Shown: positions 37,320 through 45,360, counted from the first letter of the whole stretch. The stretch is DNA of 63,885 nt, filler included, from Octopus bimaculoides (GCF_001194135.2; 6 parts of 5 records of this genome joined end to end with filler, not necessarily neighbours in it), one strand, 5' to 3'. The notes: generated by a model not told the origin, from the letters alone. Numbers and translations: made by a program.

Positions 37320-37511
37320 AAGGTTGCTTGTGGTTGCCAGATGGCTATAAATTTCCCATGGAGAACAATTGCGCAGGATATTGGACATGCTATAAAAAAG
37401 AACAAATAGGGAAATGCTGTGCTGTTCAGCAATCTTTTCGTGACGACAAAGGATGTGTACCAGATTTCCGTTGTTATCACAGCTGTCAGTCTTCAGCACC
37501 TGGAGGAAATG
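37320..37511 (+). CDS. Cys-rich module exon A, chitin-binding type-2-like 8-Cys variant (divergent copy)
   Basis: (E)GCLWLPDGYKFPMENNCAGYWTCYKKEQIGKCCAVQQSFRDDKGCVPDFRCYHSCQSSAPGGN(G), spacing C-x14-C-x5-C-x8-CC-x11-C-x5-C-x3-C. Acceptor tttttaaatttccaaaag|, with an in-frame NAGNAG alternative at 37323; donor G|GTATGT. 192 bp, phase 1-1. Confidence 0.85.
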
Positions 37512-37588
37512 GTATGTGATATTTATGTATTAAATAATTATATTAGAGGAGATCAAACCTGAATACTGAGGCAGTTGTAAGAATGATG

Positions 37589-37672
<84 letters not shown>

Positions 37673-38958
37673 CGTGAGAATGATGTTGTAAATATATCAG
37701 ATACTTTCATGAGACTGATGTAAATATACAGATAAAAATCGTGAATATGATGTGCATATACAAATACATACAAATATAATCGTCAAAGTGATGTAAATAT
37801 ACGGATATATTTATAAGAATGAAGTGTGGGGATTCAAGCAGAATTAAATACAAAGATTTCAACTATATGAAGCATTTCCCGTTTTAGAACCATAATCATA
37901 AGCACCAATTAAAAGTCAGAAAATAAGAGATCATTTATCAGAGGTGAAGGAGTTTGGTATTTTTACTTTGCAAAGTAGAGGTATTCATGAAAAGTTAATC
38001 ATTCGAGAAGATATTCTACTGCGTCAGTTGGCGACACCGATCTTTTTTGTCCTATTTCAAGAACCTGAAAGACTATTTAATTAATTTATATATTAATGTA
38101 AGAAGCGGTTTGTTTGAAATACAATACTTAGGTTAAAGAATTAGTCGACAATATTTGAGATCATATCTCCTTAAAGATATCTATTATCTTTTGTCCTTTA
38201 TTTGCTTCAGTCACTGGGCTGCGGCCATGCTGGGGCATCGCCTTCAGGGGTTTCAGTCGAACAAATTGACCCCCAGTACTTAATTTGCCGAACCGTTTGG
38301 ATACGGGGAGGTAAACAAAACTAACATTGGTTGCCAAGTGATGGCGGAGTACAAACACGAACACAGAGCCACATACACACACACACATTCGATGGGTTCT
38401 CACACAGTTTCCGTCATTCAAATTCAATGCGTCTCATCCAGCTGGGAGGTGGGGGAACACATACGCCATAGAAACCGGGAAACCGGGCTATGAGCTAGGC
38501 TTTAAAAGGGCGCATAAATAAAAATAAATAAAAGATAAATTAGAAAGTATTTGCTGGGATTGTTTTACTTAAAGCAAAAGTAATACGTACAGTAGTTCTT
38601 ATCAAAACACTTAGTCACCTCTGTTAAAATCATAGTATATCGATATATGAACTTAGAAATCTTTCCTTTACAGGGACACAGCTGGTAGAATCGTTAGCAG
38701 GTCGGACAAAATGCTTCGTGGAATTTCTTCTAACTCGTTACATTCTAAGTTAATATCCCACCGCGGCCATCTTAGCCTTTTAGGGTCGACAAAATAGTAC
38801 CAGTGAAGAGCTGAGGGTCATTGTACTCAACTTGTCCCCTCCTGTCAAAGTTGCAGGCGTTCCGTTCAGAGCCATGTTGTGATTTCAATCAGTCGTACGC
38901 TATGGAAGCCGGGTAACCGGTTTTATGGGTCCTTGACTAGAACCCCTTCCCTTTACAC

Positions 38959-39251
38959 CAGTGGTTCCCAAAATGGGCAGTATTGCCCCCTGGGGGCAGT
39001 GGAAAGATCCAGGGGGCGTTGAAGAAAAGTGGGATGAAAATGGCATGGCCAAAATGGGGTGACAGAATTAAATATTAATAGGTTAATTAGGTTTAAGTTT
39101 TATTTGTGAAATACAGTTGTTTTGAATTTGCTGCTGAAAGTAGGTTATATTTGTGGCGGGGAGGATGAGGGGGCGCTAGGAATGTGACCTGGGTGCCACG
39201 GTTGGTGGTAGTGGGGGGTAGTGGCAGCCCAAACAAGTTTGGGAACTACTG
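38959..39251. mobile_element. hAT-type MITE
   Basis: Termini CAGTGGTTCCCAAA and TTTGGGAACTACTG. Flanks ctttacac / ttttacat, a 6/8 match to a TSD. Confidence 0.78.
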
Positions 39252-40063
39252 TTTTACATCATTCGTAGCTGGCTCAGCAGGAACGATGCACAATTTCTTC
39301 TACGCAAATAATGACCGACACATTAACTACAGCTGTTAATTTTCGACTTTGATAGAGACCACAGTTTCTTTAAATGAAAGAAAGAATATAGTGAAATGAA
39401 TAGATTTAACAAAAAGCATGACACGTATTTTATAAACCTTGGCTAGATGAATGTCAAAGCCGAGCCGAGTTATAAATATAAACTTACAACATAAAGTGAC
39501 AAAATTAGATAATCTAAGATACTTATTCATTTGATATCTTTTGCCACTCTCACAGACACGGATAGTGTGAAATATTGACGCCAAGAACAATACTAGTCTC
39601 TCTAAATAGAAACATAATATTCTCTCTTATATTCGAGGTCAATCAAATTCTGAATAGAAACTCGTGTGTGTCTCAGTGTTTAAAAAGCTCGATTTGCAAT
39701 CATGAATATTTATGCGGATGTATCATTGCGTTTTATCTCTATTTCTTTTCTCCCTCACTCTTCCTCTTTCATACACACTCACTTACTCATTCACTCTCTC
39801 TCTCTCTTACACACACACACACATGCGTATATGTATATTTACACGCATATACAAAGATATACAGACACAACAAGAAAAAACGCACATATATTATACACCG
39901 TTTTTATCTGCCGAACTCGAAGTAGATAAAGCTATAAATAATAGCACATAAATATTGGATTAAAAAATCGTTTGAATAGAAAAATTCAGAGGCTGTCCGT
40001 TTGAATCGAATGGTCATCTTCTGAAAGCATGACAGACGTTCTACCCTTGGACCAAGACAACCT

Positions 40064-40420
40064 TTAGAACTTCTCCATCCATTTTAGAACCTCATTTCTT
40101 AGCAGCGAGAAGATATGAATATTCCCTACAAGACCGCCTATAATGGAGAGTGAACGGTTGGACATAGCGTTAATATATTTAAAGCTAAAATTTGGTTCGT
40201 GGAAAGGTTCGTAAAGACCAGTGTCAAGGCTAAGTGTGGCATCAAGGAAGTTAACTTTACGGCATTCACTTTCCATTGTTATAGTCAATCGTATATTCTT
40301 AAATAGTTTAAAAAGTTCCTTCTTAGCTCGTTCAAGTTTTACATTAGTGCAAAAGTTAAAAAAGAAGAGAACGTCGTCTCTATATAATCCTCCTCCGATC
40401 CCAAGGAGGGTGTTCTGGAT
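40064..40420 (-). mobile_element. Penelope-like retroelement RT remnant
   Basis: GGLYRDDVL...KLFKNIRLTITMES..KVNFLDATLSLDTGLYEPFHEPN...YINAMSN, typical of the PLE RT C-terminus (GLYRDD; VNFLD; SNHP). Confidence 0.85.
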
Positions 40421-42945: not shown

Positions 42946-43152
42946 ATCGTTGCAGAAATATGCCACAGGGATCAGAACTGCCCGTGCCTGGTAAATGTCG
43001 ACAATACTTGAGATGTCACCACGGAAAAGCAGAAGAGAAATGCTGTCAGTGGGGTTATTCTTTTAAACAAGGGAGAGGATGTCGCCGTGATTATCACTGT
43101 AAAGAAAAGTGTGATTCACAACATCCAACACCAGATCCACATGGTCTCCAAG
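42946..43152 (+). CDS. Cys-rich module exon B, chitin-binding type-2-like 8-Cys variant
   Basis: (D)RCRNMPQGSELPVPGKCRQYLRCHHGKAEEKCCQWGYSFKQGRGCRRDYHCKEKCDSQHPTPDPHGLQ(G). Same Cys spacing as exon A. Acceptor ttttactttgtatag|, donor G|GTATGT. 207 bp, phase 1-1. Confidence 0.9.
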
Positions 43153-43169
43153 GTATGTAACATCCGCGA

Positions 43170-43205
<36 letters not shown>

Positions 43206-44229
43206 GTCTCAAACACTTCCATATCATGTCTGTAGACATGGATAAGAACGTCAGTTCAGTCAGGCATGTTGTGTAATTTATATTCTATAATAACATCACA
43301 GATATTTCATTATTACCGATTGTAGGAATTATGATAACTTGCAAATCTACTCAGCTACGATGGAGGCATAAAATGAGGGACAGAAGTCATAACAGCAGTA
43401 TGTATAGAGAAGTGTGTAAATGCACTTGATAGATTACTGGGTGATGTCTTAGAGAAATCACATTATTGTTGGTGATACAGTATTCTATTGCAGCTATATG
43501 ACATGTGTTTGCGACTGACATGTGATGACGATTCACTCTCTACCTGAAATAGACTCCCAACCTCTGTATCATGAATGGTTATGTGTACTACTTCTAACGA
43601 AAGCCAGAGCTCTCTTCGTCCACTACATAAAAAGTATTACGAAAATATGTTATTTAGATATACTTACATTTTAGTTGTTTACACTATTTTACGCTTGTTT
43701 ATACACTTATACATTGAAGTTCACAAATTTCCTTATTTAAATTATGAACCATATTCCTTTCGATAATATCAATAGGATCACAAAACTTCTTTGTAAACGA
43801 GAATTTCTGTTTGGTCGACTCTAATTTTCAAATTATTGGAGTCCGTTGCTCTACTCATAGTGACGTATAACTGGCCGTGTGTAAATATCAGAGTAGGTAA
43901 AAACACACGTACATAATCTTAAGTCTGGCCCTGTGCCTTATTTGTTGTGAATACGCGAACAGAATCTTTAGGGTTGCAAAAAATCAAACTAAGACTTACC
44001 TCTCACTGTTCTATGCGAATAATGTCTGGATGTTATGGCACCATGGGTTATTTTGATTGACAAAGCAGTTGCTTCGATTTGCCATTTCGAATTCTGCTCG
44101 GGACTGACACACTTCAATAACTACTAAATAATCACACACACTGTATACTGACACACACTTTTTCCATTTTAGTTTCGCTATTAACTGTCCTTTTTTTAAG
44201 AGCCTTTTAGATCTGATGTAGTGATTTTC

Positions 44230-44610
44230 TTTCGCTTTTTATGGCAAATTGACCTTTCCTCGTCATATAAGACTTATATCTGACTTCTTCGTAGACAACA
44301 TTTCTGACTGTTCCTTCTGACACATGGAGATCTTTTGTAATTGATCTTATGGACTTTCTGGGATTGTGATAAATAGACTGTTCAACTTGCTGGATAAATT
44401 CAGATGTTCTGATGATTTCAGAGCGTTTAGAATACTTTTTATGCTTTGATACTGGTGATACATTTCCATCTTCAGTCTCGAACTCCTTACAAACTTTGCA
44501 GACGAAAGATCTGGCAACTTTTAAAGATCAAAATATTTCTAAACATTTATAACCACAAATAACAGCACGCCTCTTCATTTCTTGAGTAAACTGAGGGTCT
44601 GCCATTATTA
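44230..44610 (-). mobile_element. Tc1/mariner-superfamily (maT-like) transposase N-terminal remnant
   Basis: Manual translation: MADPQFTQEMKRRAVI...KVARSFVCKV.KE...RSEIIRTSEFIQQV...NPRKSIRSITKDLHVSEGTVRNVVYEEVRYKSY. Confidence 0.72.
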
Positions 44611-45153
44611 TTTTCTGAAACAAAGATTATACAGAGTTAGCAAAAAGTGCAGCAATGACCGAAAAAAGTTGTGTCCTCAAATACCTTACGCACCTTGTCT
44701 ACCAAATCCACTCACAAGGTTTGGTCAGCCTGAGGCTATAGTAGAAGACACCTGTCCAAGGCATCACACAGTGAGACTGAACCTGTGTGGTTGGAAAGCA
44801 AACCTCTTACCACACAGCCACTCCTGCACATACATACATACATACATACACACATACATACATACATACATACATACATACATACATACATACATAATAC
44901 ATACATACATGCANNNNNNNNNNACAAACACACATACATACATACATACATACATACATACATACATACATAATACATACATACATGCATACATAATGCA
45001 TACTTACATACATAATGCATACATACATAACACATAGATACATACACACATATACACACACATATATTTGTGTGGGTACACGTGAGTGAATATATGTGGG
45101 TTTGTAACAATTTCCAGTCTATATTGTACGGCACTTTATTTTACTTTGTATAG

Positions 45154-45360
45154 ATCGTTGCAGAAACATGCCACAGGGATCAGAACTGCCCGTATCTGGT
45201 AAATGTAGACAATACTTGAGATGTGACCACGGAAAAGCAGAAGAGAAATGTTGTCAGTGGGGTTATTCTTTTAAACCAGGAAGAGGATGTCGTCGTGATT
45301 ATCACTGTAAAGAAAAGTGTGGTTCACAACATCCAGTGCCAGACCCACACGATCCCAGAG
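45154..45360 (+). CDS. Cys-rich module exon C, recent paralog of exon B
   Basis: (D)RCRNMPQGSELPVSGKCRQYLRCDHGKAEEKCCQWGYSFKPGRGCRRDYHCKEKCGSQHPVPDPHDPR(G). 19 differences in 207 nt versus exon B by manual count. Acceptor ttttactttgtatag|, donor G|GTGAGT. Confidence 0.9.

Follow-up and report, generated by a model that had tools for sequence, protein, structure and literature searches.

The CB-like domain is the second chitin-binding domain of the molluscan Pif and BMSP shell matrix proteins (Suzuki et al. 2009, 2013, cited in PMC11291548); Pif97 is composed of VWA, chitin-binding (CB) and CB-like domains (PMC11291548). The proteins considered in that paper were picked by their VWA domain, and because VWA was the selection criterion, a gene without it lies beyond the paper's scope. 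For cephalopods, "LamG3/Pif-like" proteins have been described that possess a signal peptide, consecutive ChtBD2 domains and a LamG3 domain, and no VWA domain (Setiamarga et al., bioRxiv 10.1101/2021.07.10.451900; Yoshida et al. 2022, PMC9635652). One such protein, with three ChtBD2 domains, occurs in the eggcase matrix of Argonauta hians (bioRxiv 10.1101/2021.07.10.451900); a LamG3/Pif-like transcript is highly expressed in the arm and mantle epithelium of A. argo, and the gene type has also been reported in the shell-less Octopus bimaculoides (bioRxiv 10.1101/2021.07.10.451900; PMC9635652). Here we analyse a stretch of 63,885 nucleotides from O. bimaculoides (GCF_001194135.2), composed of six parts of five records joined with filler and hereafter called the window, in which three plus-strand exons (A, B and C) each encode one module with eight cysteines. 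Together they form the front portion of a single large octopod gene, which represents a known family in an unusually expanded form and is partly annotated and misassembled in the O. bimaculoides reference.

Exons A, B and C and the type of their module

The piece of the window that carries the exons (34026-62659) matches chromosome CM046608.1 of assembly GCA_001194135.2 base for base and starts where a stretch of at least 1066 N ends. According to its reading frame and splice sites, exon A (37320-37511, plus strand) spans 192 nt between the acceptor ccaaaag/AA and the donor AATG/GTATGT, and encodes a near-neutral CB-like module, here called A-type. Exon B (42946-43152, plus strand; acceptor tatag/AT, donor CAAG/GTATGT) and exon C (45154-45360, plus strand; acceptor tatag/AT, donor AGAG/GTGAGT) span 207 nt each and encode basic CB-like modules, here called B-type. 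In all three plus-strand frames the cysteines are spaced C-x14-C-x5-C-x8-CC-x11-C-x5-C-x3-C. Each exon is divisible by three in length and opens with two nucleotides that complete a codon; all three are therefore of phase 1-1. A preliminary description of the same sequence had reported exons, phases, cysteine pattern and aromatic positions, all of which are confirmed here; the orthologous exons of O. vulgaris and A. hians share the phases.

Exons A and B are recognizably related within the piece (tblastn E=2e-8), and the proteins encoded by B and C are 88.6% identical. Exon C is a tandem duplicate of B, located 2208 nt downstream, and the duplicated unit takes in about 100 nt of the upstream intron. 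That B and C are haplotypes or an assembly duplicate was ruled out by a base difference of 9%, a dS of 0.27 and a separate syntenic partner for each exon in O. vulgaris. Beyond A, B and C, no further readable copy of the eight-cysteine pattern was found in 34026-62659, and a search with A0A0L8H876 of O. bimaculoides (tblastn), together with a survey of every open frame from 55 amino acids upwards, found no other coding exons in this piece, LamG-type exons included, except transposon fragments. Exons B and C are already annotated as XP_014789785.1, "protein PIF", in which B is spliced to C. This model is a fragment of 135 amino acids that begins at an internal methionine in exon B and runs on into the intron 3' of exon C.

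The cysteines of CBM14 domains follow the consensus CX13-20CX5-6CX9-19CX10-14CX4-14C. If Cys1, Cys2, Cys3, the second cysteine of the CC doublet, Cys6 and Cys7 are taken, the spacings in A, B and C are x14, x5, x9, x11 and x5, all within this consensus. In comparison with the Pfam profile CBM_14 (PF01607), whose gathering score is 22.1 bits, exon B scores 23.7, exon C 22.0 and exon A 14.8 bits, the match spanning profile positions 1-41 of 53 only; A, B and C joined score 38.2 bits, and a protein with nine modules (P0003) scores 78.2 bits. A profile built from 32 diverse eight-cysteine modules matched only CBM14 proteins in the PDB: Aplysia EHEP (7e-6), the squid beak protein DgCBP-3, Avr4, chitinase CBM14 domains and CHIT1. 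Because the second cysteine of the doublet aligns with the canonical Cys4 in these profile alignments, the first one is an extra cysteine. All eight cysteines are invariant across the 32 modules, which is compatible with four disulfides, the putative fourth one, suggested in the preliminary description, linking the first cysteine of the doublet to one of the last two; the invariance does not reveal how the cysteines pair. Aromatic positions of the CBM14 type are likewise retained, namely the Y after Cys2 and W-G-Y-S-F after the doublet.

Structure prediction gave a consistent picture. AlphaFold modelling from a five-sequence alignment reached a pLDDT of 81, one of the five models being confident; from 28 sequences, five concordant models were obtained (78-80) with the same five strands. 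In Foldseek searches of the PDB the top 7 and top 12 matches were all CBM14 folds (CHIT1, EHEP, Der p 23, Avr4 and tachycitin), with TM values normalised to the query of 0.48-0.66. The E-values of these matches speak against the assignment, being weak (0.02-0.75) because the domain is small. Taken together, the marginal Pfam score, the PDB profile matches and two AlphaFold predictions with CBM14 fold matches make the predicted assignment of the module to the CBM14/peritrophin-A fold a sound one. The ChtBD2/CBM14-type fold with two additional cysteines, as it had been proposed before, is supported by these results.

The nearest domains of known structure illustrate what is shared and what is particular. 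With CBM14/ChtBD2 domains (PF01607; CHIT1 6SO0, Der p 23 4ZCE, DgCBP-3 7BWE) the octopod module has in common the spacing of the six canonical cysteines, the predicted fold and a marginal-to-passing Pfam score; it differs in two added cysteines (the first of the doublet and one of the last two) and in its C-terminal part. Avr4 of Cladosporium fulvum (6BN0, 4Z4A), matched by both the sequence profile and the fold search, is also a CBM14 fold with eight cysteines. Its extra cysteines, however, are placed elsewhere, and it is a single-domain fungal effector shielding chitin, unrelated in gene structure and architecture. A link to tachycitin (1DQC), drawn in the preliminary description, holds at the level of a distant fold match (Foldseek probability 0.57-0.72), but neither the cysteine pattern nor the architecture agrees: tachycitin is a single horseshoe-crab antimicrobial of 73 residues with ten cysteines (five disulfides), whereas the octopod modules have eight cysteines and are repeated in a large multi-domain protein.

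When 1.84 billion representative proteins were searched with a profile, 146 matches were obtained. Among the 147 proteins listed, 34 carry the eight-cysteine spacing, and the remainder are ordinary six-cysteine proteins with multiple CBM14 domains. Every eight-cysteine match with a source name or species is a mollusc; most of the others come from unnamed metagenome or run assemblies. The source-named matches include "protein PIF-like" of Saccostrea and of Argonauta hians, as well as proteins of Haliotis, Lymnaea, Batillaria and unionid mussels. In full-length Pif-like proteins the eight-cysteine module directly follows a canonical CBM_14 domain and precedes a LamG-like domain: in the A. hians PIF-like protein (P0116), the canonical domain occupies residues 263-314 and the module starts at 316, and in the Saccostrea protein the corresponding positions are 273-325 and 327. 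Every module of the array aligns only to residues 315-380, approximately, of the PIF-like proteins, and no array module aligns to the canonical segment (263-314 of P0116). The module corresponds to the CB-like domain of Pif97, because it takes the same position after a canonical chitin-binding domain (PMC11291548). Judged from these alignments, the eight-cysteine form is not new, but is the CB-like domain of molluscan Pif/BMSP proteins, with which it shares the cysteine spacing and the signature NCRxYWxC...CCPxGxxY..GxGC..D..C...C. The earlier suggestion of a new variant is therefore not borne out, given the 34 of 147 listed proteins that carry the pattern and a gene already named "protein PIF". 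In contrast to Pif/BMSP, the octopod modules come without VWA or canonical CBM_14, in about 16 copies, and are basic (pI about 8.9), whereas the Pif CB-like domains are acidic.

The locus in Octopus vulgaris and Argonauta hians

The organization of the gene becomes visible at the orthologous loci of O. vulgaris (L002, OX597821.1:60541556-60637087; 95.5 kb, gap-free) and A. hians (L003, BAAFZT010000011.1:23269671-23290444). In O. vulgaris, an A-type exon at L002 30235-30426 has the same phase as exon A of the window, with a protein identity of 84%. It is followed by B-type exons between 35265 and 62802, comprising twelve full copies and two truncated copies beside (TA)n runs, by three diverged modules (66931, 70614 and 72768), and by three LamG-like exons (74843, 79658 and 81396; 74843-81482 in total) that are 80-83% identical to the C-terminus of O. 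bimaculoides A0A0L8H876 (P0002). A signal-peptide candidate, the A-type exon, the B-type exons, the diverged modules and the LamG-like exons thus lie in this order on one strand, with about 16 full modules. The entire C-terminus of P0002 is a homologue of the LamG-like end of the A. hians PIF-like protein (phmmer 1e-28), and it also gives a weak Laminin_G_2 match. Exon B of the window is syntenic with the O. vulgaris exon at L002 38609.

The A. hians locus shows the same order. Its A-type exon (L003 9981-10169; same phase, 65% amino acid identity to exon A of the window) is followed by one B-type exon and at least six almost identical copies, so that at least eight module exons are present. 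The latter six (L003 11594-19897, spaced 1.1-3.5 kb) are near-identical both in protein and in the flanking splice sequences. In these two species the module exons are without exception of phase 1-1, with AG at the acceptor and an in-phase GT donor. Concerning the array of three exons in the preliminary description, these exons are real, but the array is larger, with copies very probably hidden in gaps and about 16 full modules in O. vulgaris. Neither in the window piece nor at the 95.5-kb O. vulgaris locus nor at the A. hians locus did tblastn searches with the A. hians and Saccostrea PIF-like proteins find coding sequence for VWA or a canonical CBM_14 domain.

A tblastx comparison of O. vulgaris with Argonauta flagged a short conserved exon on the 5' side of the A-type exon. 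The O. vulgaris version is located at L002 19505-19571, about 10.7 kb upstream (MSLNIIFLITLCCLIKETLSAV, donor T/GTAAGT), and the A. hians version at L003 4302-4365, about 5.6 kb upstream (MFLLKTFVITLFCLISGTLSH, donor C/GTGAGT). Both begin with a start codon, encode a hydrophobic core and end in a phase-1 donor that fits the phase-1 acceptor of the A exon. We regard it as the candidate signal-peptide exon; its counterpart in the window would fall past the left edge of the piece, and a tblastx comparison of the upstream part of the window with the upstream region of Argonauta gave microsatellite matches only. The earlier statement that the window holds no signal-peptide exon was accordingly correct, and the modular secreted protein it had envisaged is probable in view of the conserved phase-1 candidate at both loci. 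Because this exon is preceded by AG, there is probably a 5'-UTR exon further upstream. Exon A probably encodes the first domain of the mature protein.

Public gene models of this locus are partial in all three species: none of the models includes the candidate signal-peptide exon, and those of the two Octopus species also lack the A-type exon. The O. vulgaris protein CAI9726915.1, annotated as "PIF-like", contains nine matched stretches of module. Its model (L002 10001-85532) starts with two short 5' exons (10310 and 17688) without homology to the family, which are doubtful. It also takes in a truncated module exon (41243-41323), which would add an odd number of cysteines. Two such truncated modules were seen at L002 39794-39877 and 41243-41326; each consists of the last 28 residues only and directly follows a (TA)n run, as if the repeat had replaced the 5' part of the exon. 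In A. hians the annotation divides the locus into a partial gene of 127 amino acids, with the A-type and one B-type module, and a separate gene of 730 amino acids.

The preliminary description had further raised the possibility that the array serves as a pool of cassette or mutually exclusive exons, with transcripts that would differ in the number or choice of modules. Any subset of phase 1-1 exons can be spliced in frame, CAI9726915.1 uses only about eight of the roughly 16 modules, and the eggcase protein of A. hians has been reported with three ChtBD2 domains, as against at least eight module exons at the A. hians locus. Phase 1-1 is the general rule for shuffled extracellular module exons. 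As such, it says nothing on splicing. Furthermore, exon skipping in models of near-identical repeats is a common annotation artefact, the three-domain eggcase protein may stem from another locus, and a choice among B-type copies would alter little but the length of the protein, because the copies are almost identical. Docking or selector sequences and competing RNA structures were not noticed, though no search was aimed at them. We therefore consider such a repertoire improbable. Even more speculative, and given very little credence here, is a combinatorial use of the array with tissue-specific exon choice and differing valency, in which the three-domain LamG3/Pif-like protein of the argonaut eggcase would be one short isoform of the locus. 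If true, it would tie an expanded exon array derived from a shell gene to the re-invention of a shell-like structure.

Copy similarity, hidden exons and the break in Octopus bimaculoides

Between exons B and C, we counted 9.3 synonymous and 9.7 non-synonymous changes (dS 0.27, dN 0.062). As the resulting dN/dS is 0.23, the coding sequence of B and C has been kept by selection. The copies of O. vulgaris differ by only 0-1 amino acids, with dN/dS values of 0-0.15, and those of A. hians are nearly identical; this likeness of copies within a species suggests unequal crossing-over or gene conversion. Homogenisation is incomplete, because B and C keep their own syntenic partners in O. vulgaris and their dS of 0.27 is similar to the interspecies values of 0.25-0.37. 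In exon A, all eight cysteines are kept as far as Argonauta.

No assembly gap cuts through exon A, B or C. Several gaps, however, interrupt the array around them. Two lie within microsatellites: 40626-40897, whose counterpart is 106 nt of O. vulgaris sequence without an exon, and 44914-44923. A third, 41771-42250, covers unread sequence in which synteny and flanking sequence place a putative plus-strand B-type module exon, orthologous to the O. vulgaris exon at 35265. The window sequence 40902-41770 aligns to L002 34422-35263 and ends 1 nt short of that exon (35265-35474). In addition, a flank of about 60-70 nt that lies directly 5' of B and C recurs on the plus strand at 41702-41770, where it is 84% identical to 42879-42933 and runs into the gap. 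Since synteny stops 1 nt before the O. vulgaris exon and the intron flank abuts the gap, it almost certainly hides an exon. A third copy of the flank (47417-47482, plus strand; 89% identical to 42859-42920) runs into the gap at 47483-47582, which probably hides a further module exon. The flank occurs nowhere else in the piece. We ruled out that the sequences at 41702-41770 and 47417-47482 are an unrelated dispersed repeat, as the flank is confined to four array positions in the piece and O. vulgaris synteny puts an exon right after it. Finally, the gap at 45383-45760 (plus strand) starts 22 nt past the last base of exon C; its counterpart, L002 41122-41729, includes the partial module 41243-41326, and judging from this alignment the gap may hide a truncated module copy.

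In each unit of the array, an (ACAT)n or (CA)n microsatellite was observed 100-250 nt 5' of the exon (window 42740-42860, 44826-45060 and 47583-47632), and a (TA)n run after B. These microsatellites coincide with assembly gaps, and could also drive unequal crossing-over. The repeats broke the O. bimaculoides assembly, with at least one exon almost certainly hidden in 41771-42250 and probably another at 47483-47582.

Collinearity with O. vulgaris breaks at 47483-47582, a gap of exactly 100 N. Beyond it, window 47586-55250 aligns in reverse to L002 13465 down to 5, the region upstream of the O. vulgaris gene. Because the sequence beyond is this inverted upstream region, the array in the window ends at 47482, and continuity across the gap is unsupported. 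The 3' modules and the LamG part of O. bimaculoides (A0A0L8H876, a separate gene model) are located elsewhere in the assembly. Two explanations would account for the break: a contig was misplaced or flipped, or O. bimaculoides carries a genuine inversion, one breakpoint of which falls within the array. A gap of exactly 100 N is the usual sign of a scaffolder's join.

Several points weigh against an intact gene of the kind outlined for O. vulgaris. At the junction of the candidate signal-peptide exon with the A exon, the O. vulgaris A exon starts with AT (TAT after T) and that of A. hians with AG (CAG after C), while exon A of the window starts with AA, so that a signal-peptide exon with the same terminal T as that of O. 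vulgaris would yield TAA, a stop codon, at the O. bimaculoides junction. Exon A is almost neutral between the two Octopus species (dN/dS 0.96, based on only 15 differences). The model CAI9726915.1 is partial, as it omits the A-type exon and about half of the modules. A search with the conceptual signal peptide, A and first B-type module matched only XP_014789785.1; no protein joining these parts was found in the collections searched, and no transcript evidence was found. A genuine inversion at 47483-47582, as opposed to a scaffolding error, would moreover mean that the O. bimaculoides gene is split and that its 5' part may be non-functional.

These points raise the question of whether the window holds a broken or decaying copy, in which a real inversion parted A, B and C from the rest of the array and from the LamG part and left a truncated or pseudogenised fragment. 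The reversed upstream region after 47582 is exactly what an inversion with one breakpoint in the array would produce; the near-neutral exon A, the possible TAA codon, the lack of any transcript-derived protein in the protein database searches, and the short NCBI model with its internal start and intron read-through would all fit. A misplaced or misoriented contig, on the other hand, explains the break equally well, given that it coincides with a gap of exactly 100 N and that the piece is bounded upstream by at least 1066 N. None of the three exons has lost its reading frame, its splice sites or any of the eight cysteines, and purifying selection acts on B and C. On balance we regard a broken copy as unlikely. 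The O. bimaculoides reference, with its hidden exons and 100-N break, misrepresents this gene, and the O. vulgaris locus can serve as the template for work on cephalopod Pif-like proteins.

Family placement and proposed function

In all likelihood, the gene is an expanded, VWA-less relative of the molluscan Pif/BMSP/"LamG3" family of matrix proteins. Like the cephalopod LamG3/Pif-like proteins, the O. vulgaris locus encodes ChtBD2-type domains followed by LamG3, without VWA, the window representing the first part only. It differs from the reported proteins, which have three chitin-binding domains, in an array of about 8-16 or more modules, in the presence of the CB-like type only, and in the basic B-type copies. 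The isoelectric points are 6.8 for exon A and 8.9 for exons B and C, in line with the preliminary description, which had called B and C rich in Arg, Lys and His; B-type modules range from 8.7 to 8.9 in all three octopods, compared with 4.6-5.8 for the Pif CB-like domains.

On this basis, we propose that the protein would be secreted and that its many CBM14-type modules would bind chitin fibres side by side, so that it could serve a chitinous extracellular structure as a multivalent cross-linker or as a coating. The LamG-like end might provide a second interaction surface, as proposed for matrix proteins of the Pif family. Purifying selection, probably together with unequal crossing-over inside the array, would keep the B-type copies alike. 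Shell-less octopuses would thus keep one module of the nacre protein Pif, multiplied many-fold, which fits the published idea that shell-matrix genes were retained for other chitinous structures after the loss of the shell. The locus offers a concrete candidate for such a role: a secreted protein with about 16 basic modules of the chitin-binding type.

Chitin binding of these modules is predicted only, and the best solved relative by sequence and fold, Aplysia EHEP, argues against it, since EHEP binds polyphenol and is not a chitin scaffold. CBM14-fold modules might accordingly bind a ligand other than chitin, such as polyphenols or tanning agents in the manner of EHEP or, through the basic surface, acidic polymers or mineral, or might act as a tachycitin-like antimicrobial. 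The basic charge of the B-type modules, so different from the acidic Pif domains, and the presence of tachycitin among the fold matches would be in line with this. Nevertheless, the aromatic positions of CBM14 sugar-binding faces are kept, and the other PDB matches are true chitin binders (DgCBP-3, Avr4 and the CBM14 of CHIT1). The ten-cysteine pattern of tachycitin is not common to the modules, and at least 16 modules combined with LamG resemble a matrix protein rather than an antimicrobial peptide. A non-chitin ligand therefore appears rather doubtful to us, and the chitin-associated matrix protein remains our preferred interpretation.

Putative remnants of mobile elements were noticed in and around the array. 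A fragment of a mariner-type transposase lies on the minus strand at 57259-57576 (Pfam Transposase_1, 71.5 bits), and an adjoining minus-strand frame (57039-57347) contains the typical C-terminal motif ...SPDLAPS.YH.... Open frames in the introns at 40067-40624 (minus), 42370-42510 (plus), 44210-44527 (minus) and 47095-47403 (plus) look by eye like remnants of reverse transcriptase and Tc1/mariner elements; Pfam at E<=0.01 confirmed no transposon domain in these frames, the single mariner fragment being its only success. Short interspersed repeats were noticed at window 49319-49650, 52060-52460 and 54057-54284, and occur in many copies and in both orientations throughout the O. vulgaris locus.

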